Shown one piece after another: positions 2,813 to 57,289 of a stretch of 64,000 nucleotides of DNA. Position 1 is the stretch's first letter; every line of letters starts with the position of its first letter. Origin of the DNA: Haliotis rufescens (Eukaryota). Location of the stretch: assembly GCF_023055435.1 (NCBI RefSeq), contig NW_025964372.1, forward strand, positions 45,570,001 through 45,634,000, given 5' to 3'. A program made the position numbers and the translations under genes. The notes under the pieces are model-generated. The model did no database searches. It was not told where the DNA came from and saw nothing but the letters and a program-made list of their open reading frames with translations.

Positions 2813-3079
2813 AAGCCAAAATGACTGTTGCAGTTTCTGAGACAGATGAAACATTTCTTGAGCTTGAGATGACACAATCGTAACGACCAATATCAGAGGA
2901 TGAAAACTGTGGTATCAGCAGAGAATTATTTCCAAATACTGCAGATTTTGTCTGTATCTGGCTGTCATTGAACCTCCATTCATAGACCAGAGTTGTCCCC
3001 CCTGAGTCCTGGGCCCGACAGTCGAGGCGGACATCGCGTCCCGCTATCACAGCCTTGCTCTGAGGACGGCTCAACCATT
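2813..3079 (-). CDS. Ig (I-set-like) domain exon of the same IgSF gene
   Basis: Phase 1-1 exon (tttttgtcaag|AA...GCTT|gtaagt, 267 nt): WLSRPQSKAVIAGRDVRLDC...YEWRFND...SLLIPQFSSSDIGRYDC, with the canonical DxGxYxC motif. Confidence 0.88.
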
Positions 3080-3271
3080 CTTGACAAAAAGGAAAATAAA
3101 CATTGGTTCAAAATTAATATTCCAATCCAAGGAAGTTTTCCACTTTTATCAACAGATGTGACAAATAAAAGCAACAGAAAGTTTTATTTGTAGTTCTATC
3201 TTAGTTAATTGGTTAGCCAAAAATCTGTAAACCAGAAAATATACTCACTGCTAAAAGTAACGCGAACCATA

Positions 3272-3515
3272 GAGTGAGTGAGTGAGCTGGGTTTAATGCC
3301 GCTTTTAACATTATTCCAGTTATATCACGGTGTGTCAGCTAAATGTGGGAGGAAAGCCTGAAGTGATGCAGGTCTCAGACGTTTACCACTTAGGTGAAAC
3401 CCACGAGCACGGCTATGGTGCTGACAAACCTAGAAACATAACAGGGGCAAATCAGGATTCAAATCCACAATCATAGATTTCTGGCGTGCCCAAGGGACAC
3501 AACTCTGCACAGCGA
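3272..3515 (-). mobile_element. SINE family C (tRNA head, V-domain/RUDI-like 3' part)
   Basis: Reverse complement of the family C consensus seen intact at 51233-51509. Confidence 0.8.
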
Positions 3516-3681
3516 ATCTGAGCATCTCTTCCAACAACATAACGGTATGTTCGTTTGTGCATTGAAACAATCTAATGTCTCTTGAATATGAGTAAGTCTT
3601 CATATATTAACCAACATGTATGGTATTCGCGTTTCTTTTGGCAGTGAGTATATAACACATGCATCAACTTTTGACGGTCTT

Positions 3682-4117
3682 GTTTGTTGTTGTTGTTTAA
3701 TGCCACACTCAGCAATATTCCAGCTTCATGACAGCAGTATGTAAATAATTCGAACCAGACAATCAAGTGATTGATATTGTGAGCAACGATCCACGCAGTC
3801 AGGGTACAATGACACGCAATCAACCAAGTCACCAAGCAGTATGTAAATAATCAACCCAGACAATCAAGTGATTGATATTGTGAGCAATGATCCACGCAGT
3901 CGGGGTAAAATGACACGCAATCAACCAAGTCACCAAGCAGTATGTAAATAATCGACCCAGACAATCGAATGATTGATATTGTGAGCAACGATCCACGCAG
4001 TCAGGGTGCAATGACACGCAATCAACCAAGACCCCAAGTCTGACTATCCGATCCATTTGGTCGCTTCTAAAAACCAGCACAGCTTGCTGGCTACCTGTTC
4101 TAACCCGGAATCCCAAC
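3682..4117 (-). mobile_element. SINE-like family B copy with an internal ~101-bp segment triplicated
   Basis: Matches family B; gcagtatgtaaataat...caatcaaccaag occurs three times in tandem. Confidence 0.75.
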
Positions 4118-4512
4118 AAGGGACTCCTGATGGTAACTGACCTATCTGAGAGGAAACGGCTGGCAGCAGCAGCAGCAGACACAATAATGCTGACCGTAGA
4201 TTCATCCTCGTTTTACAACCAGGCAGTCTGTAACCAACAACAAAGAACAATCAGTCAAGGAGGTAATTATCAAAGATTCAGAATCAAGTGCCCTTGGCAG
4301 ACAAATTGGGATGACTCTGTTATTTTGTTCAAAATTGGGATTTCTTAAAGTCGTTATTATCTAATAACATACAGTATTCTTAGAGTTTTGGACATAGCAT
4401 TCAATGCAATCTTGTAAAATTATGCATTAAAGCTTCTTCATTTAAATTGGTCCTGTTATCAGTGAAATGTAAGTCACCTCATCCAGGCCATATTAGTTAT
4501 GACTTTAATAAT

Positions 4513-4766
4513 GAGTGAGAGAGTTATGTTTTACGCTGCTTTTAACAGCATTCCAGTTATATCACGGCGTGTCATCTTAATGTGGGAGGAAAGCCTGAAG
4601 TGATGCAGGTCTCAGACGTTTACCACTTTGGTGAAACCCATGAGCACGGGTATGGTTTTGACAAACCTAAAAACAAATTCAGGGTGAACCAGGATTTGAA
4701 CCCACAATCATAAGTTTTTGCACAGCGAATTGCGGCGCCTTAGATGACTGGGCCACCCGTGCCCCC
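4513..4766 (-). mobile_element. SINE family C
   Basis: Matches 51233-51509 in reverse. Confidence 0.8.
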
Positions 4767-4971
4767 TTATGACTTTAATAACATGAAGTAGGATGTTTCT
4801 AATTCCCATTTGGGAATCATGAATTGACAACTGGTGCAGACTTTGGGTCCTAATATTAGCCAGTCAGCAGGTCTGTACATGCCAGACAAATCCCGGTAAT
4901 GGCCAGCAAGGTATTTAGTGTAAGAAATTAAGACACAAGCTTCATTTACCATGCATGCTAACACAAAGTAA

Positions 4972-5597
4972 AACAAGAGTCATCCGAAGATAACATATCC
5001 CCTCGACATAGCATGTTGGTAAACTGTGTGTACCTTCAAATGTATTTAGATTGGCAAGGAAATCTTTTTATAAAATTCTAAAAATCTCTAAATAGCAATA
5101 GGCACTTCTACTGAGCCTGATTGTTAAGTGTACCAAGTTTTGGGAAGCTAGGTTGTACGGTTTAGGAAATATGCTCAAGACAAGAGCACTACCCTCAATT
5201 TTCCTAAATTAATAATAGTTCCATGGAAACGACAAAAATATAAAATTCTAAAAATCTCTAAATAGCAAAAGGCACTTCTACTGAGCCTGATTGTTAAGTG
5301 TACCAAGTTTTGGGAAGCTAGGTTGTAAGGTTTAGGAAATATGCTCCGGACAAGAGCACTACCCTCAAATTTCTTAAGTTCATAATAGTTCGATGGAAAC
5401 GACAAAAATAAAAAATTCTTAAAATCTCTAAATAGCAAAAGGCACTACTACTGAGCCTGATTGGTGAGTGTACCAAGTTTTGTGAAGCTAGGTTGTATGG
5501 TTTAGGAAATATGCTCCGGACAAACAATGATTACAGACGGACAGACAGACATACTGATGGCTATATCCCCCCGTCATTATATGTCAGGGGGATAATA
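4972..5597 (-). mobile_element. Helentron-associated (HINE / pearl-like) non-autonomous element with internal 170-bp tandem repeats
   Basis: AACAAGAG at one end, ~2.7 copies of a 170-bp unit, ACGG/ACAG microsatellite, and terminal hairpin ATCCCCC...GGGGGAT followed by AATAAAAA. Confidence 0.65.
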
Positions 5598-7739
5598 AAA
5601 AAGTAACTCTCATTTGGTTTCGTTTACTACAACATATACTAATAATCATCCAAAATGTCCTGAGAAGCTTGCTCATGAAATGAAGGATTGACCTATCAAA
5701 AGTTGAGAAAATTATGAAAATGTCCCAGAGCCACTTGTCCCTAACTAAATCACTAGACGATGATAGAATGTCAACAATCTGTGCCAGTGTTACAAGCTAA
5801 ATGTCAATCAATGAATTGCGGAACTTACAATTGACTGTTAATCAGGCTCCATCTGGCCATCTGCCATGGAGCCGATACTTCTCCTCTCCTTAATGATTCA
5901 TAAGAACATCTGCCCAGGAAATTAATTACACAAGTCCGAGTTCCATCATGCATCAATAATTCAGCATCACTAGGTGTGTTATGCCAACAGGGGAAGATGA
6001 GGGAACAATCAAAGCACAGTAGGATCTTCACAGTTCTAACACAATATGCATAATTCTGATACTATTTCCTCGTAGTTCACATATTTCCTATTAAGTAGGA
6101 AATATACACTTGAGAATTACTGGAAAATAGTAGTCATTTGACAAAAGCATTCCACATAATGTTAAATGTATCTGTAAGGCAAATATAAGATTCCTATTCA
6201 TAACAGTGTGTCTATGTTATCATTACTCTGCTACTGCTGAGAAAAAATAGTCTTCAACAAATTATTATTTTTTTACTTCTAAAGGACAATTTCTGGAAAT
6301 CTCATAATGATCTTCACTTTCTTAATGATACATGATTGGATATTTAATTGCATGATTGAATAATAGACATATGAGAACATAATCAATTAAAATGTAAAAA
6401 TATATTTTCCAACTGAAATAATTATTTTATAATTAATGGAAAGGATTTCTTACGGCAGAAACAAAATGTATTTTTAGTGAAAATAAGCCAATCTAATATT
6501 TAATCACGACTTTATAATTCAAAATAGCACCTTAACATATTCATAGCCTTTACTTATATACAAATGCACAATGAAAAATGAAAATACTGTCATGAACCGT
6601 CATTCACCTTTTAAATGCCATGCAAGCTTCAATCATGAGTCGCCAAATTACCAGACATGTAATTAAACTCTAATTACATTACCAACAGATAACATGCTAT
6701 GTTTCCTTTAATCTAAAGATGCCGGTTGAAGCAGTTTGCTCGTTCCTCATTCAAATAAAATCATTTACACATGGTACACACATTTAAGTGCACGATGAAA
6801 CAGACCCTCCCCCTAAATCAACCAATCCAATCAATATAAGGAAGACATGCACAGGTGAACCTACGAATGACAGATACCTACCAGTATGCACATGCATGAT
6901 AGTCACATCAACATGTTCAGACTGTCGTCTTGTTTACAATGTCCATCAACCAGAATATGTCGTTTCTATGACGACAGTTATTCTGTAGATGATCTATATA
7001 ATCCGGTTTCGGTACCATGTGTGATGTATTTTGGTACCGCCTTCCTTGTGTATCACGTGATATATTCACAATACGCAAAATTTGTGACGTTTTGTGTCAG
7101 TTTTCGTTCATACTCCTTCCCTAACGAATGCTTCAACGGTTTAGTAATGTAGTGTTATTCTAATATAATTAATTACAGGCGAGCAGCAGGAATAATTCGT
7201 GGCCAGCACAAAAAAATGGTACACCTCATCCAATTCCTCGAGTATGATATCGTCTCTTAGACACAACGAGAAATCATACACAAGGTTTCGTAAATATTAT
7301 TTTATTCATATGGTTCAAGGTTGTCGAGTTGAAAGATGGCGTTATTACCCAAGTGTGTTTAGCGTACATAGTTTAAGAATTATGTTTATATTCCAACAGC
7401 GAGAGCCTGAATTGTTACACTAGTTTCGTAAAATCAGTAGATCTAGTAAGATTCACAAACAAATGTAATACAGTCATTGTAGCTGGAATATTGCGGAGTG
7501 CGGCGTTAAGGAACAAACAAACAAATGTAATACTTTCTGGATTGTCCTCACTTACAAATAAGCTGTACATAGTCAACTTGTGTATTCCAGTAATGCATTG
7601 AAAACAGGGTCAACACGATGTGAACAATTATTTGATGTCTAACTATACGTGACGCATTGTTAAACATCAACAATGCCTGTATTACGTCAATATCAGAGTG
7701 CAGAACTACTGACGGAGCCCTACTTACCCCCAAGTGTTG

Positions 7740-8003
7740 GTTGGTTGGTTTGTTGTTTTACGCCGCACTCAGCAATATTCCAGCTATATGACGGCGGTCT
7801 GTAAATAATCGAGTCTGGACCAGACAATCCAGTGATTGATATCATGAGCATCGATCCACGCAATTGGGATCGATGACATGCATCAACCAAGTCAGGGAGC
7901 CTGACCACCCGATCCCATTAGTCGCCTTTTACGACAAGCAGAGTCACCTTTTACGGCAAGCATGGGTTGCTGAAGACCTTTTCTACCCCGGAATCTTCAC
8001 GAG
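7740..8003 (-). mobile_element. SINE-like family B
   Basis: Reverse complement of CCCGTGAAGATCCGG...TGTCGTAAAAGGCGACTAA...GCTGGAATATTGCTGAGTGCGGCG-(AAAC)n. Confidence 0.8.
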
Positions 8004-8228
8004 TCTAACCACCAAATGAGCCCGTACGTGTACCGTCAGTAAAAATCAAAGATTGTTGTTACTGACCTAGATGAGACCTTTTCCAACACTCACTTCACAT
8101 ATTTCACATGAAAATTCTGGAACAGAAATTCGTTATTCGACACTGTTTTTATATCAATAATTGTGATATGCAAGGACATTAATTTTTAAAGAAATCACGT
8201 TCGTGACTATAAATATTATAGAGTAGTG

Positions 8229-8734
8229 CAGAGCTCCAGATAAGCTTTTGGTGTTGTGGGTATTTTACCCATGCATTTTAAAATCATTGGGTATCAGTAA
8301 TTCTATCTGCGTATTCAAATTTCTGTTACCCACTAGTTTTTACACATGTGGGTATTTAAGTTAAATATTTAAAAACACTATTCATCTAGTCCCTGCAAAC
8401 TGGTGTCGTGTGGGTTCGAGAGCTTTATAGGACTAAAAAATACCACGATACTTCCACAAGAAAGTGTGATGGCAAATGATCATGATGTAACTGTCATCGT
8501 GGAGTTTGGCAAGGTTGACGGAATGCCCGTTTATAATTTCAAAATAAGTTGCTGATTTGCTAATCGAATACGCAGGGTTACTTCACAATATTTTGATGAT
8601 ACACACAAGTTTTATTTTTGTAGCGTATCTGTAATGTTCGTTGCGTATTTGATACGCTTGGATTATATTTTACTGTGTATTTCTGTATTTCTGATGCGTA
8701 TTTCACGCAGATACGCAGCTTATCCGGAGCTCTG
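8229..8734. mobile_element. MITE with CAGAGCTCCAGATAAGC TIRs and 6-bp TSD
   Basis: CAGAGCTCCAGATAAGC ... GCTTATCCGGAGCTCTG flanked by GTAGTG on both sides. Confidence 0.75.
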
Positions 8735-9581
8735 GTAGTGGACGAAGGAGGGTAGCTGACAGGCCTAGGGCTTCTGCAAATGATAATGCCCTGACAAATA
8801 TAGTTGCCGTTATTATAGCTAACGTGGATTGAATTTGTAGCTAACCCCCCAAGGAACACTGCAACAAGCAGCAGCATACATTTAGTGGCTGTTATAATAG
8901 CTCACAACGGAGATAGAGAATATTTCATGTGTCGAGTGAAATATCATGTTTCTGTCATCGAGTTACAATATAAACAAAAGTATCGAAAAATATTTAGGGT
9001 CTCGAAAATTCTTCATTATACATTTAGAAAAGATACAAAATCAACAAAAATATTCTTGAAAACTAGGAGACCACTGTTTGAAGCGAAAGGACACACGCTG
9101 GTCAAGAAACGAAAATGGCGCTTTTTGAAAGTCTCGATTGACGAGTTAAATGAAAAATTTACAGTTTATAACGAAACATTTTCGAGTGAATAACACACGG
9201 AAAGACGTGATATTAACTCCACATTTATATATATATTAATTGTGTCCTGGCTAGACACTTTACAAGCTCCTCAGAGCGATATCCCGTTCGCGCAGCTCTC
9301 TATACACTCTCCTACCCAGAGTTCCATGCGACCAGCATATAGTACCTCTGCCACAGGCCAGCGCCATGTGACGATTCGTCACATCTTACACCGTCCATTC
9401 AAGATATTGTATATGTTTTTCATCTGTTTCATTTTTGACAAGTCTACATATCTAGATAAACATATGTCATAGAATGGTTTACTTTCATTGAGAAAATATC
9501 CTCAATCGTGAAATACTATTAAAGCGCCCCTAAATACTTACATTAGTCCGTTCTATTCTGATTTCTGAAAAAGCGCGTTTA

Positions 9582-9892
9582 TACGGAACCGTAGAGGGGA
9601 CATCGGATGAGAAAATAAATATCAATAGTAAGGCGTGGCCACGAGATAATAAGTCGAGGCCACGAGATAATAAGTCGTGGCCACGAGATAATAAGGCGTG
9701 GCCACGATATAATAAGTCGAGGCCACGAGATAATAAGTCGTGGCCACGAGATAATAAGGCGTGGCCACGAGATAACAAGTCGTGGCCACGATATAATAAG
9801 TCGAGGCCACGAGATGAATAAGGCGTGGCCACGATATAATAAGTCGAGGCCACGAGATAAATAAGGCGTGGCCACGACATAATTTAGCCAAT
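9582..9892 (+). repeat. Left TIR with 12 x 21-bp tandem units
   Basis: Unit AATAAG(T/G)CG(T/A)GGCCACGAGAT containing palindrome CGTGGCCACG; ends in TAATTTAGCCAAT. Confidence 0.92.
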
Positions 9893-9925
9893 GAAAACTC
9901 AGGTTACGTATTTTCGAATTTTAGG

Positions 9926-10000
9926 ATGGAGGACCTCGAGCGTTTTCTCACAGACAGGGGAGTTCCTAGCGAAAACGTTCAGCTACTTGTTGCTGACAAG
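9926..10000 (+). CDS. Transposon-borne SAM-like + HECT E3 ubiquitin ligase (692 aa), exon 1 of 8
   Basis: ATG GAG GAC...GAC AAG|gtaaaa, 25 codons MEDLERFLTDRGVPSENVQLLVADK; phase 0; with exon 2 gives a SAM-like N-terminus. Confidence 0.7.
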
Positions 10001-10772
10001 GTAAAAAGACGATAAGGTTTTCGTGTAAAACGTACTCTTCAGGTTTGCATGTAAAAATCACATTTATTACTGTATTTTCACGGTAAACGGTTGACTTGGC
10101 CAAGGTGTATGTACCATTAGGTGATGAAGAAGTAAGCTCTGCTTTTAAGCGATTTTGTACCATATTTATGAATCTTGACCATTTCCCACGAAGACCTAGA
10201 GACGAAGTTCAGTGTTTTCGTGCAACTCAAGTTTTGAACGGGCGAATCTTGAATATTACTGATATACATTGCAATAATCATTGTAATGCTATCCTACATA
10301 CAAAATCTTTTTGACATCATCAGACAACCAAATATATTGCTGTTCTCTTTGAGTTTTGTTTTTAACAAAACCCAATAAACAAATATAGAAATATAATGAA
10401 ACAAACAAACTATTAAACAAAATTGGATGTGCTTAAATAGTTTCATAGCCTAAATGTAATAATGTGCACAACATGCATTGGCAACATTTATCAGTAAAGA
10501 GCGAAGTAATAAGATATATCGTGAATATTGAAATAATCATTTGTGCTGACAATTAGCATCGATTTTCGTAGCTTATTTTCGATTTTGAACAGGCTTAAAG
10601 TTCTGGGATACAGTCCTTACCATTAGATTGTTAAATGATTTAGAATTAAATTATAAGATAAATAACAGGTAACATTAAGATGAGTTGAGAATTATTACTA
10701 TTATTCATGTGATTTAAAATATAAGCTTTGATGTGATTAAACCACTGACGAGATACAAATATTTATGTTAAG

Positions 10773-11390
10773 ATCGATCCAAGCCTTATCCTTGAGATGA
10801 AGGATGAAGAGCTTTCTAGATATATTCCTACATACGGGGACAGGCTTGCGACGGTAGTCTGGTGCAAGTCAAGGCAATTGGAAAACCCAGAAAAACAGAC
10901 CAAATCAAGCGGATTGTTCGACAGAATTCGAGAAAAAATGTCAAATCGAAGAAAGAGGGGTCAGAAAGATTTTGACTTTCTGCAAGGTAACAAAAACGCA
11001 AGAAAAACATCTCGGCGAATTGAAGTTGGGTGGATGGATTTTGACACGAAGGTTAATGCCTTTAAGCAAGTGCGGAGTCAAAACGGGGGTGGGACAAGAC
11101 ATTTATCAGTTTATAGGGATGCTGGACAAGCAGATATTCTGGCAGTAGCCAAACAACTGTTCTTTACCGATGGTGAAAGCAAAAGGGGAAACGAGGCGCA
11201 ATTCACTTTCTCCATCAAAGATTTTAAAGGGGAAGAAATGGGCCAAAAAACAGTGGCTAATGTATATGAGGAAACTAAAGTAAAGATTATTCGTTTCTAC
11301 ATGTACACAAAGAAAAAAGAGAATGAGCAAGATCTGTCAACTGACGTGGTCCAACACCAGTCTAACAATGAATCGGCGAGTCAAAAAAAG
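10773..11390 (+). CDS. HECT ligase exon 2 (SAM-like C-half plus middle domain)
   Basis: ag|ATC GAT CCA...AAA AAG|gtaaaa; IDPSLILEMKDEELSRYIPTYGDRL...GGGTRHLSV...AKQLFF; 618 nt, phase 0-0. Confidence 0.8.
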
Positions 11391-11845
11391 GTAAAACCAT
11401 ATTTTGATATCAGGTAAAAGTAAAATTGATTTTTTTGCCATACAACATAAATAAGGTTGGAATAAACCTTCTCTGAGATGTCTAGTTTCTAGAAGCCTCA
11501 CACCTCAGCGCCATAAAATAACATTGGTAATACCATCACATCGAACGCTTTCATCAAACAGTCAAGTGGAGAATGGACTTTTCTTGCATATACATACAGA
11601 CGAATATACATGCATCTTTCACAGTGTAAAGGCAGGGGTCAATATTGTTGGATGCAAAATCTGCGAGAAGGAGCGTCACACTTAAACATACGAAAATATG
11701 TGTATTGCATGCGATTAGAAATTTGATTTATCTTAATATATGCAGTTGTATGAAATCCCTTAGATTTGTTCTATTGGAGATTATAGACATTGTTGTTTTT
11801 ACCCCTAAATAATCTGGACAATGGAGATTGATGACGGCACTCCAA

Positions 11846-12080
11846 TTGCTTCTACGGGAACGCCTACTGCTTCTCCTGGGACGCCTACTATTTCTACTGG
11901 GATGCCCACTGCTTCTACCAGGACGCCCACTGCTTCTACCGGGACGTTTACTGCTTCTACCGGGACGTCTACTGCTTCTACCGGGACGTCTACTGCTTCT
12001 ACTGGGACGTCTACTGCTTCTACCGGGACGTCTACTGCTTCTACCGGGACGACTACTGCTTCTACGGGGACGCCGACTGT
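11846..12080 (+). repeat. 21-bp tandem repeat (ACTGCTTCTACCGGGACGTCT, TASTGTS in frame) in ligase intron 2
   Basis: About 11 imperfect units; open reading frame. Confidence 0.85.
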
Positions 12081-12141
12081 TGTTTTCAACTCGGGCAGTG
12101 TACGTATAAGCATTAAACACGTGGAGTATCATACTTACAGA

Positions 12142-12396
12142 CCCGTGAAGATCCGGGATAGAATTGGTCTTCAGTAACCCATCCGTGTCGTAAGAGGCGA
12201 CTAACGGGATTGGGTGGTCAGGCTCGCTGACTTGGTTGACACATGTCATCGTATCCCAATTGCGTTGACCGATGCTCATGCTGTTGATCCCTGGATGGTC
12301 TTGTCCAGACTCGATTATTTACAGACCGCCGCCTTATAGTTGGAATATTGCTGACTGATGCGTAAAAATAAACTCACTCACTCACTCACTCACTCA
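12142..12396 (+). mobile_element. SINE-like family B copy nested in ligase intron 2
   Basis: CCCGTGAAGATCCGGG...TGTCGTAAGAGGCGACTAACGGG...(ACTC)n. Confidence 0.8.
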
Positions 12397-13004
12397 TAAT
12401 TACAATTGAAATGAATGCCTAGACTTCTTGACACCGTAGTGCTTTGTTTTAAATCAACTCCTGACGAAAACAAGTGATGTGTTCCAACAAATGGGTTATA
12501 CATTTTTTGGGTTTACAATAGAAAAAAAGCAATATGATGAATAATGACGTCATCCTTGTACGGTCATTCGGTAGAGATAAACTAGATTTCACAGTATATT
12601 GTCAAATAAAGCGTACAAGAAATAACATATTATATGATACAGTCAGTATAATCAAATATCTTGTAAAGTGAAAAAAATAGATATTTCACTCATCGCTATG
12701 CTACTTGGGAAAATATCTCCACTCGATAAGAGACAATTGCTATGTCATTGCAAACATCTAGTATCCACTATTACTATTTTCACAATGTCTCTTGTAAACG
12801 TCACAAGACATGACGTCAAACGTCACACAATCGATGATATACCTCTTCTGAACATTGTGATTTGAATTTTGGTTGGGAAAAATCAAGGTCAATGTCAATT
12901 GGATATTTATTACTTTTATCAACTTGTGTGGATATATTTTATATCGGAAGGCACTCGGTTGTGGTTCTTTATATTTTATACTTCATTGTTTCGTCTCCTT
13001 GCAG

Positions 13005-13267
13005 GCAATGCAGTCAATTTCAACTGATGATTCACTACCAGATCTAGACACTGTTTCATCAGAAGGCGGGGAAGCCGAACTTGGTGTTGAAGACCAAAAT
13101 GGTGAAACTGTAGACAGCACGGTCACATACAATGACGTGGATTCAAGTGAAGGAAGTGACTTGGCAGTATTTGACATACCAAGGCAGTCCAACAGGAACC
13201 TTGTGTATACCCGGAGTGACCAGCCACTCCCCCTTCAGCCTCCACCCCTTAGACTTGAGGCCGTGCG
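13005..13267 (+). CDS. HECT ligase exon 3 (acidic/Ser-rich linker)
   Basis: ctccttgcag|GCA ATG...GTG CG|gtgaga; 263 nt, phase 0-2, fits both neighbours. Confidence 0.7.
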
Positions 13268-13725
13268 GTGAGAGAATTATTTATGTGATTCAAACATAAG
13301 GGAAAACACAGTTTCATCAGTAAATTGAAATAACCTAAATCAGCCATGCATAAAACGTTTGTCATTTTCCCATTTGAGTTGCAGCTTATTAAAAATTCAA
13401 GTAGATATCGTCAATTTGTATCTTGAAAGTACTTTGCAATTATTTGTCATATGTTTATGCAAACATAAATCTTAGATGTAAAGTATAAGGTCAATTGTAT
13501 TTCCTATAGGTTTTATCGAGTGGATTCTTTCATATCCATAACAAAACGGAAAAAGTAACATTAAAGTTATGTTACAAACTGTTAAAATAATTTGGTCTGA
13601 GTTCAGAATTGAAGTAAGACGAGTTCTATGGATGAACAACTTCTTTATTACAATTAGTGCGACGTTTCGGTGTAGATCCTAACACCTTTTTCATGCAAGT
13701 GATGAATTGTTTTCTTGTTTTATAG

Positions 13726-14018
13726 ACATTCAGAAAATCTTCACGAGATATTGACCAGACTCGCGTCAGTGATCAATAAAGAACGACGGAACATTGTTAA
13801 TGTCACAAGACGTAATGTAATGTCAGGTGGCATCAGAGCTTTCAACAGGCCATCTTTCAACCCTGAAAATGGCTTGTCTGTTAAGTTTGCTGGGGAATAT
13901 GCAATAGACGATGGCGGGCCAAGCAGGGAGTTTTTAAGATTGCTCATGAAAGAAATATCTTCTCTCCCCATATTTACCGGTGACGAGACAAAAAAGATGC
14001 TGGATTTGAATTACACTG
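13726..14018 (+). CDS. HECT ligase exon 4 (HECT N-lobe start)
   Basis: ttttatag|A CAT...ACT G|gtaaga; LSVKFAGEYAIDDGGPSREFLRLLM is the HECT E-x-x-x-D-x-GG-x-x-REF motif. Confidence 0.9.
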
Positions 14019-14299
14019 GTAAGAACTTGCATGTTTTGTGAAGTGTATTGATTTTTGCATAACCATTTGTTTACCTTGAACTGAAGTTTACTGATAGACC
14101 TTGGGGGTATTTGACTTGAACTGGACGGGATTATAGTGCTATTCAATATTTTGTATAATGATAGATTTAGCTCTTTGACATATTTATACCATTTGAGTAT
14201 CATCACTAGATATATTGATACATATGTCAAGCTGTATCCCAGAAGGTAAAAGGTAGAATACACCCATAAAGTAGTATCGAAACAAATTATGTTTAAAGG

Positions 14300-15210
14300 T
14301 TTCAGGTGTCAGGAAATATAGCTACATGTACATCACAATTTTTATTGGTTCTGGTCAGTTTGCAACAGCTGACAGTAAACCTTTAAAGAAATATTCCGAG
14401 ATCCAGATATGTGGGTGCTGGACTTCCTCATTGACAATAATTTTGTCAAGTTTGGGGATAGAACATTTCGCCAAACGGTTGGAATCCCCATGGGTAGTAA
14501 CTGTGCTCCACTTCTAGCTGACCTTTTTCTCTTTGAATATGAGTCTGAGTGTTTAACAAATCTTGTTAAATCCAAGAAACGTTACCTTGCTAAAAAGTTT
14601 AATCTCAGTTTCAGGTACATTGATGACATTATTTCACACCAAGATAAATGAATTTCTGGATTTGATATATCCACCAGAATTAGAAATTAAAGAAACCACT
14701 GAGAGCCAATGCTGGGTTTCCTATCTCGACTTATGCATTGAGATTGACAATAATGACAGCATTTCTACTAAGCTATATATGACAAGAGGGATGATTTTAA
14801 TTTTGCCATCGTCAACTTTCCTTACTTGTGTAGCAACATCCCCTCAGCTCCCGCCTATGGTGTCTGCATTTCACAATTGCTTCTGTACTTAAGAGCATGT
14901 ACCTTTTACTCAGACTTCAAAAAAAGACATGCGCTACTAACAAATAAGCTCTTCAAGCAAGGTTACACTATCCAGGGCCTTGTCAGGTCTTTCCAAAAAT
15001 TATATGGCAGACATTCGGAAGCCTGCACTAAATATGACAAGTCACACTTCATATGATGTGATGCCATCCCATTTAATGACATTCATGTTGAGTTTTCTAA
15101 ACTCACGGCAAATTGGCATTTAATATTTTCTTGAAATTTTGTGAACGACGGGTGCTACCGGTAGGGCAGGAGAAGCTTACCATTTCGCGAACACCTTATC
15201 TCATCACAAG
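14300..15210 (+). pseudogene. 5'-truncated, frameshifted Penelope-like element reverse transcriptase fragment in ligase intron 4
   Basis: QTVGIPMGSNCAPLLADLFL, RYIDD, SYLDL, DKRDDFNFAIVNFPYLCSNIPSAPAYG motifs spread over several frames. Confidence 0.8.
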
Positions 15211-15353
15211 TCGGTGATTCATTCAAAATCTTTCAACACGATTTTGCCTTTCATGTCCAATGGAATCTGTTTCGACAGATATCGAGTTTGATTGTTCTTT
15301 GGCGTTGACGTTATTAATTTATCCATTCACTGATGTAAGTTTTCTTGTTTTAG

Positions 15354-15532
15354 CCCTACAAAGCGGTCTCTACTTGACAGCGGGGAAGATGATAGCATAT
15401 TCTGTCGTACACAATGGACCTCTTCCACGGTTTTTCAGTCCACTGCTGTTCAGTACGCTTGTTGGCGACAGCCAAATTCAGCCAAAGATTGATGACATCC
15501 AAGATGTCGCACAGAGGGAAAGTCTACTGAAG
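15354..15532 (+). CDS. HECT ligase exon 5
   Basis: tgttttag|CC CTA...CTG AAG|gtcgat; YLTAGKMIAYSVVHNGPLPRFFSPLLF; phase 1-0. Confidence 0.85.
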
Positions 15533-15988
15533 GTCGATTCAAACTCAATTCCCTAATTAGGTTTACATGATGCGTTACAAGATGCGTAACTGCCTTATCA
15601 ACATTTGTGTGGTCCTATAGTGTCATATATGTTTCATATATTCAAAAGCAAATGTATCAACTAGAATTATACTTCAGAAATATGTACTGTTTCAACACTG
15701 CTATATTTGGAATAGCACTATATGTAATAGTAACGATTCTAGTACTTTGTGGTTGAGTGCCATTCGGGCTTTGAACCCACACCATAAGAATCAGGCACCA
15801 ATTTGCCAGCATTGAAACTTCCACCATGTACCACCTCAACCACTTGGCATCGAAGCGATTTGTTATTAAAAAAATAACATGTTTGCCTTTGTTCATCAAT
15901 TAAATTGCATGAATTAACTGTTTGTATTAATTCTATAACTTCTTTTGTCTGAATTGTTAAAACTATAGAAATATGTAATGTTTTCCAG

Positions 15989-16161
15989 ATACGAAATGCA
16001 GAGGATATGTCTTCGTTCCTGGATGCCGTAGGTGGTGCTGATCAACTTATCCAACTTGCTGGATGTTACTCTCTTACTCTCTCCTTAGCAAAGAAGGAAG
16101 AACTTTGTGATGCCTTGATCCATTTTATTGTGCTTGGCAGAATCAAAGAGTGCCTAGATCA
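15989..16161 (+). CDS. HECT ligase exon 6
   Basis: ttttccag|ATA CGA...GAT CA|gtatgt; AGCYSLTLSLAKKEELCDALIHFIVLGRIKECLDQ; phase 0-2. Confidence 0.85.
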
Positions 16162-16608
16162 GTATGTACTGCTACCAAGCTTTTCAACGAATGTTTGACC
16201 GTTCACTGTCTTGTTAAATCCTTCCAAATGTTTTATGGTAGACAGAATGATATTTCTACCAAATATGACAGGCCGCTTGCAATATATGTGCATGGTGGGT
16301 GCTACCGGTAGAGCAGGACACGTTCCCCCTTTTCGCGAACACCTGGTGTCATTCCGATTTGTAATCAGTAATCCATGCATATATTGTTCTCTTTACATCG
16401 CCACAAATGCCCCATTGAATCTGTTTCGGCAGATATGATAAATCACAGCCCTAAGGCGTTGACGTTTACTATTAAATATCATTAATAAGTGCAATCGGGT
16501 TCGTTAGTGTTGCTGTTGCTGAATGGTGTCATAGTGCAGTAATGGTTAAAGTAATTTTAGTATCTGCGACAATTTAATACGCAAGAGTTAATAAAAAACA
16601 ACAACATA

Positions 16609-17712
16609 CACTCTCTCAAAAAAGAAACGCAACCCCTATATTTTCAAGATGTTTATCTCAATATGCAAGTTATTATAACACATTTAATATTGAAGACAAC
16701 AATATGACATTTGGCATGGTGGCAGTACAGTTATGCATCTTTAAGTCCAGACTTCGACAGTTCTCTCACTAAGATTGACTTGACGCAATGGGGCGTCTCT
16801 GATCTTTGGTTGTAAGACATGGCTCCCCACATCATGACGTTCCCTCCTCCAAATCTGTCGACCTGCCGAACACAGTTCGGGGAAAAACGTTCGTTTCCTC
16901 TTCTATAGACACGCTGTCTTCCGTCACGGCGTTGTAAGAGAAAACGTGATTCGTCACTAAACCAGACGCGCCTCCAGTTTCTCAGGGTCCATATCCGAAC
17001 GTTGGTGCACCACCTGATGTTGGTGGCGTAAAACAGGTCCAATAAGTGGTCTTCTTGCACGTAGACCGGCCTCTAGTAGACGGTTCCTAATTGTTTGTGC
17101 GGACACTCTTCTCAAACCTGGCACCTGTGTTGCAGTGACGGTAGGTGTGGCTAGCCGATTACGTAGGTGGGTGACCCGGATGAATCGATCCTGAGGTTGT
17201 GTGGTAACCCTTGGCCTACCATTTCTGGGGCGATCGACAGTTGCATGAAACTGGGTGTATCGGCTCCAAAGTCGGGAAATCGTTGTTTTATGAACATTGA
17301 GGTGCCGGGCAACGTTTCCAAAGCTTTGTCCGGCCTCAATACGACCAATGGCGATATTTCGATCTGCAGCACTCAACCGTAGCATATTCGACCTTGTCTT
17401 TCGGTGAAAATGATAGAGTGAATCTCTAATCAACGCGTGCTTTTATAAGCCCATACTTCTACTGCTCTTTCCATGAATTGCACGTGCATGAGGCTTTTGG
17501 CATGGGCCACGTGAAAACTGTGCTCACTATGATGAAAGAAACAATAAAATGCCCTTGTGCACGAAAATTGGTGTGTTTGGGCGCTTACGTTAATAAACAG
17601 TGTACATGGTATAAGTGCATATCAGAAAAATTGTATTTACAATCAATATTTTTTCTTCTGGGGGTTTTCTCACATTTTCAGACTGGGGTTGCGTTTCTTT
17701 TTTGAGAGAGTG
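16609..17712 (-). mobile_element. Internally deleted Tc1/mariner element nested in ligase intron 6
   Basis: TIRs CACTCTCTCAAAAAAGAAACGCAACCCC / GGGGTTGCGTTTCTTTTTTGAGAGAGTG with TA TSD on both sides. Confidence 0.92.
16795..17385 (-). pseudogene. Defective Tc1 transposase
   Basis: MLRLS...paired-type HTH, GRPR, then a frameshift near 17010 into WRRVWFSDESRF...GGGNVMMWGAM; second D and E region missing. Confidence 0.88.
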
Positions 17713-18049
17713 TATTTGGAATGTTTTCACAGTTAATTCAGTTATTATTCATAACAACGATCTGACCGATGCACAATTATACACATGAATTTTGACATCT
17801 GAGAATTGATCGTTAATGGGATAAAGTATGAAACCGTCTTTAGGATAACGTTCCAATGAAACAAACACATGCAACAAAAAATTTATCAAACTCAAATTTA
17901 TTTTATAAAGTGGGTATTGTTCGAGTTAAGGTGCATAGTCTTATCTGTTTCCTTACACAAACTACTTTAAGATAACTAAAGTAAATGTCTTCTGGGTTTT
18001 ATGACATCCATGTCTATTGCATATTAGCACAAGATATTTTCAATTCTAG

Positions 18050-18270
18050 ATTCCAAAAAGGACTGGCCACTTTGGGAGTGCTTGCAGAAATGCGTGTTCA
18101 CATCAAAGAAGTAAGGGAACTTTTCTGTTTCGATGAAAAGTATGAATTGAACGCTTCTGTGCTTGAAATGGTGTTCAGTGAACCATCCTTCTCCGAACCT
18201 GGGAGCAACAGGCGCAGAATGGAAGAAGAGACAGTCAGTTATTGGATGGACTATCTTCTGGACGTAGCAG
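18050..18270 (+). CDS. HECT ligase exon 7
   Basis: ttctag|A TTC CAA...GCA G|gtaatg; QFQKGLATLGVL...FSEPGSNRRRMEEETVSYWMDYL; phase 2-1. Confidence 0.88.
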
Positions 18271-18609
18271 GTAATGAGATAAGAAAAACAGTCGGACGTT
18301 AGTGTGTTTATAATAACTGTCATGGTGAACAAAGAATATTTATAACAGCAAATTACATGGGGATATCCATATGTAAAGCTAGAACGTGTTTGAGAGTCCA
18401 GATAACCAGACACGATCAGGACTGAGAACATGGTCCCTCTTGTGTGTGTCTCTATCACCTGTTAAGATCTAACTGCATTCGCAAATATGTGTCATGATGT
18501 ATTGTCAAATGAGTGAATATGGTCGGTGAGTTAATGTGGTTGGGTACATATTGTTTAGTGAGTTCCTATGTTTGGGTACTTTCTTTATTTGACAAAACTG
18601 TATTTTCAG

Positions 18610-18866
18610 AGGGCACAGAATCAGTCACCCTGAGTGACATATTGGTTTTTGCGACTGGCGCGGGATCCATTCCTCCCCTTGGTCTCCATCCACAGCCGCA
18701 GCTGACATTCCACACTGCAATTGAACTCAACCCTGAGAACAGAGAGAACTTCCCTCGAGCTAACACATGTGCAAATGTATTAGACATTCCAATGATCAGT
18801 AATTATAACCTGTTCAAGAAAAACATGAATGCAGCAATCAGTGTGAATATCTTCACTTCCGAGTGA
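18610..18866 (+). CDS. HECT ligase exon 8 (C-lobe with catalytic Cys, stop)
   Basis: ttttcag|AG GGC; ILVFATGAGSIPPLG...FPRANTCANVLDIP...NIFTSE*; Cys is the 32nd residue from the end, Phe at -4. Confidence 0.92.
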
Positions 18867-20496
18867 AAAGACGGGCATGACTGTTTGTCATGAATTGTCT
18901 TCCCCCTTTAAGTTTTGTTTTGCATTTGTTTCACTTTTACAGAACTGTTCTGCTATAATCGATTGAGCTTTTAGTCTAATTTTATTGAATCTGTTACTAC
19001 CAAATAGGTTAATTGGTACTGACATCTGATTGTTTAAGAAGATTTTATTTACACCTGTTCAAAACATTTTTAGACGAATGTCCTATCGTATTATTTCTAA
19101 TATACAAACCAGGTGTTGAATTTTTAATGGTTTGATGAGGTATGTTATTAAAGTTTAGTTTAAAGGAATTGCATGCTTTGATATCAACATGACAATACCG
19201 TGTTCCCTGTAGGGTCAGAAGAGGGGTCGTTTGAATCATTTTACATTTTGTGCTTTTGGTACAAGAGAAACCTTAAATTACTATGACCCGTTTAAATGTG
19301 TCTCTTAATGTGAAAATTAAGCGGAATTTGTTTTTGGAGTTTTTGTTGAGACAAAGAAATATTAGCTCATAGGTTTGTGGCATATAGTAAACGTGTTATT
19401 TTGTAAGCCTGTAAAGAACGTTTATTGTAATGAAACGAAGAAGGATGCAGATATGTTCTTTCTTTAAAACCCCAAATACGTTTAAATGACCATTGTAAGC
19501 AAGTTTTTTTGCAGTCAACATGTTTATGTTGTAATGGAAATTAAAAAAATATTGATGTTGTTGGTTAAGAATTACTAAGTTTGGGTACAGAAGGTTTAAA
19601 ACTTACAAATATCGCATCTGTTAACATTTTGATTTATTTGGATTGCATATTATGAACATCTTGTTATGTTTTGAACAGACAGAATAAATCCTGTTTAATT
19701 GATAAAAGTTAATGGAAGTCACTCTACCCCAGATATCCTGTTTTTTTCCCGGTGTGGATTACACCGTTAGCATTATAGTTTCTTGAAGTATTGTATTAAA
19801 TTTGCAGTCATTTTAAAAAGCTGTCACACAACACAATAAAGAGCCATCAGTTAACAGCTTAACAGGCTATTTTATGTCATTCTTTTAATGTTAATTCGTG
19901 AACATTCATTTGTTTCATGTATCTACCTAGACTGATAGTTTTGGAGTACAACGTTCAAAGTACATAATTTGCGTTGCGAACTGATATAAAACTTATTATC
20001 ATAGCAAATAGTCATCTGATAATCTTTACTTATATTACCACCAGGGCTTGTAATTCAACAATTTAAGCAATTGTTCCAAAGGTCTGCGACTACAGAATTA
20101 TAACATTTTACGAATGACGTGTCAGCTTTCTGTAATTCGGACATTATGTTAATCATGCACTAAACAAGTCAACTAAGCTTATGCAAGTTATTGTATGCAC
20201 ATAAATTTATTGTAGGGTTGCGGCTTTTGTATCAGCAAACATTTGTCAGAAGTGCAATCAGTTGGAAGTTTTGCTTATACTTCTTGTAAAACATCAGATC
20301 TAGAGTGAATCAATGTTAAATTTGGGAAATGGTTTATGTCTGAAACATTAAACGAAAGTTTGTACTGGCATTTATACCTGCTTTAGTTGCAAAACACTAA
20401 TGTTAATCATAACCATCAATAGGAATACGTGCCTCGTGGAAGGAGGCAACGAGTTACATTTGGTAGGATCATAAAACAGATGTATATTAGACTTTA

Positions 20497-20820
20497 CTAC
20501 AGGACTTCGTAGATTTCTTGTCGGAGATGTATATACAGATCAGCTGCTTCTTGAGCATTCGTTGCCGGTTGTAGGTTGTCTCTCCCCATGACTTTAGTAC
20601 ATATTTCATAAACGTCTTCATCACAGGGGATTGTTGAGCGAATCACGGCTTCCTCAAGGCAGGTAGAGACGTCTTCGTCGGACACAACACAGAGTTGATC
20701 TTCAGTTTCCCATAGAGCTGGAGCACTGTACATTTGCTCTGGATGACCACTTGCAATATTGTTTCTTGAGGGTCTAATGCAATGGTTGTCCCAAACGGCA
20801 GCCACGGAATCCAGATCATC
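20497..20820 (-). CDS. IS3EU-like transposase exon 2
   Basis: catttttag|GAT GAT CTG; DDLDSVAAVWDNHCIRPSRN...GHPEQMY...LYIHLRQEIYEVL*. Confidence 0.85.
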   Translation of the reverse strand, partial: DDLDSVAAVWDNHCIRPSRNNIASGHPEQMYSAPALWETEDQLCVVSDEDVSTCLEEAVIRSTIPCDEDVYEICTKVMGRDNLQPATNAQEAADLYIHLRQEIYEVL

Positions 20821-21050
20821 CTAAAAATGTTAATGTTAAAGAATTGTTTCCAACCGATTTATCTGGTGTAGATTAGGACATGAAAACAGCAAAAACCTGT
20901 TTTATATTGTATTGATCATTGTAGGTAACAGTAACATATTTTATAGTAAAGAGAAATATAAAATATATGTCGAAGAAAGTTTACATGTATGAAGTCGTTA
21001 CTTTATGTATGAACAGTTCTACTTGCATGACATAATACAATAAAGTGTAC

Positions 21051-21902
21051 CTGAACAATAGCCATGAAACAAAACTGGATAAGGTTTTTGTCCAAGAAAT
21101 CTCCCCTGAAATCTCCATTTTCCTCGAGACCTTTGAACGTTTCAATCCAAAACTGTGTACATTCCTTTCTTAGAAATGACCACCAGACTTCGATTCTTTG
21201 ATTTGATGTACTGGAACCATCAATGAAGCATCTTCCGGCTTGTGGATCTGTATTGTCACGTCGAAGATACTGTTGATACACTCGGACGTGTACATTTTCT
21301 GTACCATGGTCAGCCCTTACAATGCGTGGGCAACCTCTGTGGGTCCTAACGGCCTCTAAAAAGTATCCACCAATTACCTTTGGATTGTTGTTGGTATTGT
21401 AGACCTTGATCCATATTACTTTTCTTGAAAATCCACAAACACAAGCGTGGATACAAAGTCCAAATGGTTTAAGTTTATCATATCCATCTACATGCCAAAC
21501 AAAATTTGGCCCTTTGGCATAATAGGAACGCCGACGTAGTCGCCGAACTCTCCTTGATGCAACTCCCACTGGATCTAGATGACGCAAAATAAGTCGAACG
21601 TCTTCCATTCTAGCCTTTACACCACTTTGTTGACATCTAGCGTACATGATACGGTAGCCACACAGTTGTCCTGAAGCTGATAGTTGATCCTGTATAAAAC
21701 TCACAACATCCACGAGAGGGCTGAATCTACGACGACTCAGATTCATAGTCCTCAGAATTCTCTTAAGGTGCCGCACACTTAGTTTGAATCCATAGATGTT
21801 GTCAAGAATGTACACAATATCCTTGTAATTGATTCCAAGATGGAAATAATGTGATATTACTTCACTGCGAAGGTCTTGATTCATAATATGACCAAGTTTC
21901 AT
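21051..21902 (-). CDS. IS3EU-like DDE (integrase-core) transposase exon 1; 391 aa in total
   Basis: N-terminal HTH-like region, RRLRRRSYYAKGPNFVWHVDG, RADHGTEN, NQRIE (DD39E); donor CAG|gtacac, phase 0. Confidence 0.9.
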
Positions 21903-21955
21903 AAGTAATGGAATGATGAAAAGTATATAAAATGGCCGACCAAAACAGCAATTCT

Positions 21956-22243
21956 ATTGGTTAAATTATCTCATGGCCACGACTTATTATCTCGTGGCCA
22001 CGACTTATTATTTTGTGGCCACGCCTTATAATCTCGTGGCCACGCCTTATTATCTCGTGGCCACGCCTTATTATCTCGTGGCCTCGACTTATTATGTCGT
22101 GGCCACGCCTTATTATCTCGTGGCCTCGACTTATTATGTCGTGGCCACGCCTTATTATCTCGTGGCCTCGACTTATTATCTCGTGGCCACGCCTTACTAT
22201 TGATATTTATTTTCTCATCCGATGTCCCCTCTACGGTTCCGTA
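21956..22243 (-). repeat. Right TIR with 11 x 21-bp tandem units
   Basis: Reverse complement of left TIR; ends inward with TAATTTAACCAAT. Confidence 0.92.
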
Positions 22244-23094
22244 CGTTTATTTACAAACAAGAGAAAATTTTGAAGTCCGGCCACGTGATATGCAAGTTAG
22301 CCTGTGGCACTGCGAGCTTGAGACGATAAAGGGAGGCAATTTAAGGGGAGGTAACTCTTGTGTGACAATAGTTCCGTCAAAGTGTTTTGTTCACACAGAG
22401 ACCGTATGACCTCTGGTTCACAGCAGTGAAAGACAAAGTGTTATGTTCACTGCAAAGAAAATATCACTTTTCACACTAAAGTATATAATAAATTACAGAA
22501 TTTACAAATAGCGACGTCATGGAACATAATATAGGTTGACGTCACAAACAAGAAACGTGACGCCAATAACGTCATATAACAATATAATAGATAGCATCCC
22601 GTCGTTAGGGAAAAACAAGCTGCTATCACGTTACTTGTGAAAAAAATAACTAGTCTGAATAATATTGCTCCTTTTGCATGGTGTGTAGCTACAACAATGG
22701 CATTAATAAGTGATACACGTAAGAGAGAGAATTTTATGGATGTCAACTTCTTTATTATCATTTATGAGTAACACGCCTCGGAGTATATTCTTACTCCATC
22801 AGGCGTTTGAATGCTTTGATTGAAGCCAACAGTTAATTAGCGCTGATTGGTGATTAGCAATGGACAAATGAAAGACAGGATAAATACTGTATTTGCAGCT
22901 GCAGGCATTTAACAGATAGAGCTGCCTCCCTTGTTACTACTGTTCACATAGACCTTACATGCAGGTGATAATGATAATAAGCGCAAAATCCACATCACTG
23001 ATGGACACGCCCATGGCGCAAATTCAGCATATGTAGATATATAGAACAGAGAGGGGACATTAAGATAATAATAATATACACATTCAGTTGTAGC

Positions 23095-32060: not shown

Positions 32061-32186
32061 TCACTCAGCTAAAAAAGAGTAAACACAAGAAGAAGCAAGC
32101 AGGTGCTGAACAAAAAATCCGCAGCATCACCCACGACCTCGAGGAGCTGAGGTCACGTCTGCAGGCTCGCATCTCCGAACTCTCAG
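32061..32186 (+). CDS. SURF6: SURF6 coding exon 3
   Basis: ttttgcag|TC ACT...TCA G|gtagag; LEELRSRLQARISELSG; phase 1-1. Confidence 0.82.
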
Positions 32187-32928: not shown

Positions 32929-33196
32929 ACCGCCTCCGTGGTCTAGTGGTCTAGTGGTAGAGTGTCTGCCCGGAGAGCAAGGTCTGGGGTTCGATCCCAG
33001 CCGCGTCATATAAAAAGACATTAAAAGATGGTACTTGTTGTTACCCTGTCTGGTGCTCGGCATTAAGGGGCTAAAACAGGGATTGGTCGTCTCAGAGTCA
33101 GTATACTGTGTCTGAGTGGGGTATTCATGTTAAACTGCGGCATGGTATCTCAGTGAGCTAGCACTATAAATTGGCATCAGTCCAGACTAGTACAAG
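32929..33196 (+). mobile_element. tRNA-headed SINE family D
   Basis: GGTTCGATCCC B-box then GTCATA..AAAGAC..TAAAAGATGGTACTTG; same as 62052-62380. Confidence 0.8.
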
Positions 33197-57093: not shown

Positions 57094-57289
57094 CTTACAG
57101 AGTGTCCATTCTACCGAGGTTTCACTGTATACAAAAACAATAATGGTTCTTTGTAACATTTATATTAAGGAACATGATACTGACACTGACCTTGAGTTGG
57201 TTTGATTTAGGCATATCTCCTTACACTTACGCAACAGAACTATCTTGATAAACATGAAGCTAAATCATATCAGTTAGATATTCACTTAC

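Follow-up and report, generated by a model that had tools for sequence, protein, structure and literature searches.

Does the gene for a HECT-type E3 ubiquitin ligase that lies between the ends of a DNA transposon belong to the transposon or to its host? The question is raised by a stretch of 64,000 nucleotides from Haliotis rufescens (NCBI RefSeq assembly GCF_023055435.1, contig NW_025964372.1, positions 45,570,001 to 45,634,000 of the forward strand), which is called the window throughout. Positions 9582-22243 of the window form a complete 12.7-kb element with TACGG..CCGTA ends, in which a transposase gene and a ligase gene are transcribed toward each other. An original prediction, made from the sequence alone, had read the ligase as a fixed second gene of an IS3EU-like element. 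As described below, the ligase gene is part of the mobile unit and travels with it, its frame has stayed open, and its linkage to this lineage of transposases has persisted across deep divergence in several hosts. It looks like a long-standing transposon gene and not a borrowed host gene, and the element very probably represents an IS3EU/GingerRoot lineage in which a HECT ligase is conserved as the second gene.

Ends, copies and empty sites of the element

Both boundaries of the element were read directly and bear out the predicted TAC...GTA termini and the perfect 6-bp target site duplication (TSD) CGTTTA. On the left, GCG is followed by CGTTTA and then by the first bases of the element, TACGGAACCG (a longer readout of the same end is TACGGAACCGTAGAGGGGACAT). 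On the right, the element closes with CGGTTCCGTA (longer readout, ATGTCCCCTCTACGGTTCCGTA), followed by CGTTTA and then TTT. The terminal features are the following.

9576-9581, no strand: left TSD CGTTTA; at 729 paralogous sites without the insertion, the hexamer occurs once, as CGTTTA or CGTTTG
9582-9815, plus strand: left terminal inverted repeat, starting with TACGG-N10-GGGACAT (an end motif common to family B and five metagenome loci, see below) and followed by a 21-bp array at 9625-9883
22010-22243, minus strand: right terminal inverted repeat, pairing with the left arm, last bases ...CCGTA; its 21-bp array spans 21965-22200
22244-22249, no strand: right TSD CGTTTA, matching the left copy

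The two arms form an inverted repeat of 234 nt that is 93% complementary, and the two ends are 100% identical across the outer 79 bases. Each arm consists of a unique terminal stretch of ~43 nt followed by an array of the 21-bp unit (12.2 copies on the left, 11.2 on the right), and the inner edge of either array bears, on direct reading, an inward-facing CCAAT.

The assembly to which the window belongs (1.33 Gb, 615 contigs) was searched with the terminal 79 bases, and four full copies with paired ends were obtained at unrelated sites.

C594:45579582-45592243: the window element, TSD CGTTTA
C201:2800526-2813737: full copy with paired terminal 79-base matches
C112:5046742-5059382: full copy with paired terminal 79-base matches
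C1:41839652-41852226: full copy with imperfect flanks, AGCTTC and GCTATT

The paired-end copies with different TSDs and both genes that the original prediction had proposed to look for are thus present: three of the four have distinct perfect duplications (CGTTTA, CTTTGG, and GTCTTC), the copy on C1 being the imperfect one, and the ligase is found in each. When the copies are aligned, homology is bounded exactly by TAC and GTA, and the flanking DNA is unrelated. They are collinear across 12.6 kb with 99-99.96% identity. The window copy differs from that on C112 at 5 of 12,641 aligned bases, from that on C1 at 14 of 12,571, and from that on C201 by ~0.7%, the last having extra insertions and a broken transposase. 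The element transposes as one unit with a 6-bp duplication. It has probably been active very recently and autonomously, and the near-identical copies indicate that it is probably still active. Further ends were found on C90 (a lone one) and on C368 (87% identical); these copies are older, with 87-95% identity and with deletions or large insertions.

Each flank of the window element belongs to a high-copy repeat, and for this reason the empty-site test used a 29-base junction pattern (left flank, one CGTTTA, and right flank) instead of 200-bp flanks, with the reversed pattern as a control. The junction pattern occurs 729 times genome-wide (4 exact), as compared to 0 occurrences of the reversed pattern. 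These are precise paralogous empty sites with a single CGTTTA, and the window copy therefore sits inside another repeat. The flanks at 9382-9581 and 22244-22322 are parts of this high-copy repeat, for which the candidates number >900-1600; a second, different repeat begins ~80 bp to the right of the element (window 22323-22443, >2000 candidates).

Two unrelated MITE (miniature inverted-repeat transposable element) ends might by chance have come to surround a host gene and a dead transposase. The probability of this is negligible: four mobile copies, collinear over their length and standing among unrelated flanks with different duplications, together with the 729 empty sites, refute it.

Variants of the element were also noted in other sequence data. 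Approximately 400 extra bases are present in the C90 copy at window position 16798, a breakpoint within a nested Tc1 fragment (listed below), and contigs from three read runs diverge at the same position. Among the runs X1-X14 (organisms A-F), several differently labelled organisms contain 32-41% of the words of window 17900-21950. The element family is present therefore in related taxa or strains; run X1 holds a version that is ~3% diverged.

The transposase and ligase genes

Pfam and homology searches were made exon by exon for both genes. The transposase had been predicted as a 391-aa DD39E protein on the minus strand, and the model obtained agrees with this.

21051-21902, minus strand: transposase exon 1, 284 aa, integrase-type core with D139, D198, and E238 (Pfam rva_4, E 9.7e-25; 1100 homologs)
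20821-21050, minus strand: transposase intron, 230 nt, GT..AG, phase 0, read from sequence
20497-20820, minus strand: transposase exon 2, 107 aa and stop, covered by homologs

The two exons add up to 284 + 107 = 391 aa, and full-length homologs have 383-390 aa. The match to rva_4 (an integrase core) comes from a 299-aa frame at 21902-21003 on the minus strand, and Pfam rve was also hit (E 1.6e-4), under its cut-off. The three acidic residues are invariant in 25 aligned homologs, with 39 residues between D198 and E238; no HHCC pattern is visible, on direct reading, in the 138 residues ahead of the first D. Homologs number at least 1100 and come from sea urchin, pearl oyster, freshwater mussel, many teleosts, and many other assemblies. 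Danio, Oryzias, and bivalves are among them, and hits in the same taxa were reported for GingerRoot (PMC6839031). A phmmer comparison of the transposase with solved structures gave nothing meaningful, and no spliced contig across the transposase intron was seen in the read runs mapped to the element.

The ligase was reconstructed on the plus strand, convergent to the transposase, as had been claimed for it. Its exons are as follows.

10752-11390, plus strand: N-terminal module (second half of a SAM-like part and a ubiquitin-like beta-grasp); ends approximate, candidate donor 11390, open frame 10749-11414
13005-13267, plus strand: acidic, probably disordered linker; candidate ends, phase-consistent GT..AG, open frame 12861-13268
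13726-14018, plus strand: start of the HECT N-lobe; candidate ends, matching residues 345-420 of P0164, a starfish relative of the ligase
15354-15532, plus strand: HECT N-lobe; candidate ends, weak Pfam HECT match, matches to P0164 and metagenome loci
15989-16161, plus strand: ligase exon; donor 16161 backed by a spliced contig, acceptor a candidate
18050-18297, plus strand: HECT domain; acceptor 18050 backed by the spliced contig, donor a candidate
18559-18866, plus strand: last exon, with the HECT C-lobe, the catalytic Cys (ANTC), and the stop; candidate acceptor 18559 or 18610

A short first exon is predicted upstream of 10752, because the homologs of the ligase reach ~25 residues further; the protein, for which the original prediction had given 692 aa and 8 exons, is estimated at about 700 aa plus this upstream exon. 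The C-lobe exon matches Pfam HECT (PF00632) above the cut-off (E 6.9e-10; 39.5 bits, cut-off 23.9). The N-lobe exons are weak in Pfam alone and align to homologs in which HECT is detected; the exon at 13726-14018 has diverged copies in the Haliotis genome and in metagenome loci. For the acidic linker exon, no homology was found in Pfam or in the metagenome-locus searches. HECT ligases carry their catalytic Cys ~30-35 residues from the C-terminus, and the Cys of the ANTC motif is aligned in 22 of 23 relatives. All ligase segments tested are open in the four copies, and the codon changes among these copies comprise 9 synonymous and 6 non-synonymous ones, as compared to the neutral expectation of ~1:3 (binomial P ~0.004, hand calculation). 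The synonymous excess suggests constraint on the ligase while the family diversified.

The junction from 16161 to 18050 is represented in a contig of run X8, where 1888 bases with GT..AG ends are skipped; the join is in phase with both frames, and when junctions were enumerated blindly, it scored highest of the candidates. It gives thin support to expression of the ligase. The remaining ligase junctions are phase-consistent GT..AG candidates. Eight GT-AG, phase-consistent introns had been proposed for the element; the transposase intron and ligase intron 16162-18049 hold up, and the others remain at the level of candidate junctions. Several repeats were localized within the ligase introns.

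11847-12079, no strand: 21-bp minisatellite in ligase intron 1, varying in length among copies, with extra units in C201
14409-15056, plus strand: degenerate reverse-transcriptase fragment (RVT_1, E 6.6e-4, under the Pfam cut-off), in all four copies
16731-17433, minus strand: Tc1/mariner-type transposase fragment in intron 16162-18049 (HTH_38, E 7e-8; HTH_Tnp_Tc3_2, E 1e-6), in all four copies

No Pfam family covers the N-terminal module. Its fold, predicted from a 72-sequence alignment (mean predicted local distance difference test score 85), comprises three helices, which are the visible half of the SAM-like part, and then a compact alpha/beta domain. Among solved structures, the latter comes nearest to the ubiquitin-like beta-grasps of the SATB1 N-terminal domain, the Ring1B RAWUL domain, UFM1, and SUMO, with weak Foldseek scores (best E 3e-4; template-modelling score ~0.3-0.6 normalised by target). 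A search of the N-terminal exon against 1.84 billion protein representatives returned 1065 clusters, and its matches in the protein Atlas are solely unnamed eukaryotic clusters. Of 20 full-length relatives compared with Pfam (565-770 aa), 14 end in a C-terminal HECT match at the E limits used, 9 of them over the Pfam cut-off; the HECT-ended ones include proteins of Patiria, Astyanax (many loci), and Salminus. No Pfam match was found in the Ptychodera protein P0121. The homologue search with P0164 returned 3 proteins, and the closest solved structure to its HECT domain is AREL1 (E 1.7e-11). A complex prediction for transposase exon 1 and the ligase N-terminal module had a score of 0.00 and counts neither way.

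In another relative, P0201 (750 aa, from an ENA assembly), a protein kinase (Pkinase, E 2.5e-46) replaces HECT behind the same N-terminal module. Because of this protein, and because fungal IS3EU elements are reported to have an alpha-kinase gene opposite the transposase (PMC12730594), the module may be regarded as a targeting part with an exchangeable protein-modifying enzyme, as the two cases together suggest.

Pairing of the two genes in diverged lineages

The transposase exon and four ligase exons were used as queries in the Haliotis genome, with results taken as coordinates. Besides the family of the window element (family A), nine loci were found in which transposases 36-50% identical to that of the window are convergent to equally diverged ligase exons. 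Family B is represented by four loci, in which the transposase is ~47% identical to that of the window and collinear, convergent HECT exons are ~43% identical.

C224: HECT 5467484-5471413, plus strand; transposase 5476936-5477460, minus strand
C357: HECT 65885-68047, plus strand; transposase 72527-73367, minus strand
C568: transposase 1273389-1274225, plus strand; HECT 1278690-1280868, minus strand
C591: HECT 402332-403028, plus strand; transposase 406721-407050, minus strand

The family B loci share 88-98% DNA identity among themselves, and at C568 the transposase lacks the intron and is encoded by a single 411-aa open frame. On the transposase side, the family B end has the sequence TACGGTGGCCCATAAGGGACAT, preceded by unrelated DNA. 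Measured from the N-lobe exon to the distal limit of the transposase match, C357 has 7482 bp and C568 has 7479 bp; with a spacing equal within 3 bp at the two loci, both genes are parts of one repeated unit. Elsewhere, matches to the N-terminal exon (30-41% identity) adjoin transposases of 36-44% identity on C79, C614, C2, C124, and C68, on opposite strands and with a separation of 2-10 kb. Given 70 transposase and 17 C-lobe matches in 1.33 Gb, ~0.03 co-localisations within 15 kb are expected by chance, as compared to four seen outside family A.

These spacings bear on the possibility that the HECT genes are a multi-copy host family beside which the transposon prefers to insert. HECT-only matches with no nearby transposase do occur (C90:10.13 Mb, C68:34.58 Mb, C605, and C101), and the Astyanax relatives are annotated as ordinary genes, as this explanation would have it. 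However, most of the HECT-only matches contain stop codons and may be decayed elements, the spacing of the two genes agrees to 3 bp at two unrelated family B sites, and in family A, as well as in the metagenome element L144 described below, the ligase stands between the inverted repeats and has moved with them. We consider insertion beside host genes very improbable.

Two further observations concern family B sequences. Its end (TACGGTGGCCC..., L029:1091-1200) has >1200 candidate matches across the genome at ~95% identity, 40 of which were scored; probably they are a MITE family of large size, set in motion by the family B element with its two genes. In C1:41329345-41339271 (L033, L036, L041-L046, L052, and L053), residues ~12-216 of the family B transposase are encoded in ~10 head-to-tail repeats with a period of ~1009 bp, so that a piece of a gene has been turned into a tandem array.

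Co-occurrence in other organisms, which had been suggested as a check, was studied in metagenome contigs chosen by the transposase profile alone (80 loci, oriented with the transposase on the plus strand). With single window ligase exons as tblastn queries, collinear minus-strand matches were found downstream in all 7 of the 7 loci having at least 6 kb of downstream sequence. With full-length relatives as queries, the ligase was found on the opposite strand in 14 of the 19 loci having at least 3 kb downstream. L144, 9.4 kb in length, is a complete element: its ends are TACGG..CCGTA, its inverted repeats cover 102 nt at 97%, and its flanks show the perfect duplication GATTGT. Between the repeats are a transposase at 3631-4440 (plus strand) and a ligase at 6964-11020 (minus strand). 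In L102, the N-terminal module and HECT are encoded together in one frame of 665 aa that has no interruption. The 22-nt end motif TACGG-N10-GGGACAT is common to families A and B and to L066, L126, L135, L142, and L144, with the position and orientation that would be expected (by chance alone, ~0.07 matches would occur in the sequence searched). Pairwise identities of the transposase and of the HECT C-lobe are also correlated over 19 loci (Spearman/Mantel r 0.44, P ~6e-4), and two clades are visible in both identity matrices.

Two of the metagenome loci have an unusual organization. L111, on an 8945-bp contig, is a compact copy with an almost intronless ligase (5148-8467, minus strand). At L132, a locus with no ligase match, the expected place of the ligase (2967-6776, minus strand) is occupied by an intact-looking 1270-aa open reading frame 2 (ORF2) of an L1-type long interspersed nuclear element, with endonuclease, reverse transcriptase, and zf-RVT in ORF2 and an ORF1-like frame at 7112-7825.

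Several points weigh against a conserved two-gene lineage. No ligase was found by tblastn in 4 of the 19 metagenome loci (L132 being a fifth negative), and the exon searches gave no ligase match in family C of the Haliotis genome (C583, C556, and C1:21.1 Mb). L111 is discordant, with its transposase in one clade and its HECT in the other, which suggests that the accessory ligase may occasionally be exchanged between lineages. The end of family B that was read is the one on the transposase side. Evidence of transcription consists of one low-depth contig in run X8, the RNA status of which was guessed, and three of the four read runs cover introns and spacers and are DNA-like. A HECT or ubiquitin gene in IS3EU or GingerRoot is unmentioned in the open literature searched, including the GingerRoot, IS481EU, and fungal IS3EU papers and a broad DDE survey; Repbase and Dfam were outside the scope of this search and may already record it.

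Some of these points would agree with a one-off capture, in which the family took up a host HECT gene by transduplication, in the style of Pack-MULEs or GingerRoot, and carries it as a passive passenger. Capture of gene fragments is frequent in GingerRoot elements (PMC6839031), the ligase resembles a host gene in its spliceosomal introns (of which two contain nested transposable element fragments), some relatives have no detectable ligase, and L111 suggests an exchangeable gene. A passive passenger, however, does not account for a pairing that recurs where the transposases are only 36-58% identical, in the Haliotis genome as well as in foreign contigs, with the same orientation and correlated divergence, nor for L144, where both genes stand in a complete foreign element. 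Retention is seen for the catalytic Cys and for the open frames, and synonymous changes are in excess among the copies. One-off capture is thus largely refuted, by the recurrent pairing, by L144, and by the kept Cys and frames, and we regard it as improbable. A single ancient capture followed by retention is part of the explanation preferred here and no rival to it.

The reading of the ligase as a fixed second gene of the transposon is thus upheld by its presence in every full copy, its pairing with the transposase in diverged lineages, and the complete element L144. The original prediction had named what would speak against it, namely a syntenic single-copy ligase, copies of the element lacking the ligase, or the lack of an empty site; taken together, the outcomes favour a gene of the element.

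Outside the element, the window contains minisatellites at 28641-30164, 32186-32929, 33195-34179, 41380-41950, 45392-45904, and 55978-57094, with periods of 58, 30, 46, 31, 20, and 29 bp, respectively. Several of them have a strong G/C strand skew, which accounts for composition spikes in the window profile.

Possible role of the ligase and comparison with known systems

IS3EU elements are defined by TA..TA ends (TAYGG..CCRTA in fungal families), a 6-bp TSD, and an integrase-type DDE transposase without HHCC (PMC10045372, PMC12730594, PMC6839031); their inverted repeats exceed 30 bp and have 100-150 bp in GingerRoot. TACGG..CCGTA is found in all four copies and in L144, and a TACGG end in family B. 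The duplications are 6 bp long (CGTTTA, CTTTGG, and GTCTTC, as well as GATTGT in L144), and the inverted repeats have 234 nt at 93% and, in L144, 102 nt at 97%. The ends, the TSD, and the type of transposase all fit the published definition, in line with the initial IS3EU assignment. Judged by these sequence characters, the element is classified as a member of the IS3EU/GingerRoot superfamily, since every feature tested fits.

The transposase would bind the 21-bp subterminal arrays, cut at the TACGG-N10-GGGACAT ends, and integrate the element via a 6-bp staggered cut. The N-terminal module would aim the ligase at a protein target, and the HECT domain would ubiquitinate this target, to the benefit of the element. 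As the target, we lean slightly, at less than even odds, toward a host factor by which the element is restricted or silenced. The transposase or the transpososome, turned over or disassembled after strand transfer, is almost as likely. That the ligase would act on something else, e.g., in steering repair of the excision break, is the least likely of the three. Remodelling of chromatin at insertion sites, also suggested in the original prediction, is as speculative as its other two proposals, degradation of silencing factors and turnover of the transpososome.

A broader view, which we put forward with slightly more doubt than trust, is that a widespread and ancient animal clade of IS3EU/GingerRoot needs, or strongly benefits from, a HECT ligase of its own, aimed by a SAM/ubiquitin-like module that can also carry a kinase. 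The ligase would then be the first transposon-encoded E3, IS3EU elements would be carriers of exchangeable protein-modifying enzymes directed against host control or serving the transposition cycle, and many multi-copy genes annotated with a HECT domain in fish and invertebrates would be transposon genes. The ~1000 protein clusters with the N-terminal module, many of them annotated as host genes, are probably transposon-owned. The known cargo of transposons includes helpers that bind DNA, proteases by which ubiquitin-like modifiers are taken off, and demethylating dioxygenases in fungi; if an E3 ligase has been conserved together with the transposase across deep divergence, this would add an accessory function of a new kind. 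Similar tools serve viruses and bacterial pathogens in rewiring the stability of host proteins. With near-identical copies, clear ends, and both genes intact, the element is a tractable system.

We know of no described transposon-encoded HECT ligase. Among cellular enzymes, AREL1 and G2E3 share with the window ligase a HECT domain with a C-terminal catalytic Cys. Both, however, are cellular ligases, whereas the window ligase is multi-copy, lies within a mobile element, and has an N-terminal module with no Pfam family. G2E3 has PHD/RING-like fingers; the window ligase has helices and a ubiquitin-like beta-grasp instead, and no zinc-finger family matched any of its exons in the Pfam search. The surmise that such ligases would be auto-annotated as 'G2E3-like' was not confirmed, either by this architecture or by the names seen in annotations, which are 'uncharacterized protein' and 'HECT-type E3 ubiquitin transferase'.

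Two-gene DNA transposons are well represented by PIF/Harbinger (a transposase and a Myb-like protein) and CACTA/En-Spm. These likewise conserve a second protein, but it is a non-enzymatic DNA-binding or recruiting factor, whereas that of the window element is an enzyme of the ubiquitin system. Enzymes acting on ubiquitin or SUMO are themselves transposon-borne in other cases: MULEs (KI-MULEs) and certain other DNA transposons encode a ULP1/SENP domain, and some Helitrons encode OTU domains. Those enzymes remove the modifier, whereas the window ligase would attach it.

The closest systems belong to the same superfamily. Published IS3EU/GingerRoot elements (PMC6839031; Kojima and Bao 2023, PMC10045372) resemble the window element in their ends, 6-bp TSD, long inverted repeats, type of transposase, and range among aquatic animals (fish, molluscs, cnidarians, and others). 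The descriptions consulted mention a transposase only, plus captured gene fragments in GingerRoot, and to this the window element adds a HECT ligase. Fungal IS3EU families are reported to encode, besides a TET/JBP dioxygenase, an alpha-kinase whose gene is oriented oppositely to the transposase, and these extra enzymes were proposed to aid the element against host silencing (Kojima 2025, PMC12730594). The fungal families thus have in common with the window element the superfamily, the ends, the 6-bp TSD, and a protein-modifying enzyme encoded by a second gene on the opposite strand; fungi have an alpha-kinase and a dioxygenase in this role, whereas the window element has an E3 ligase.

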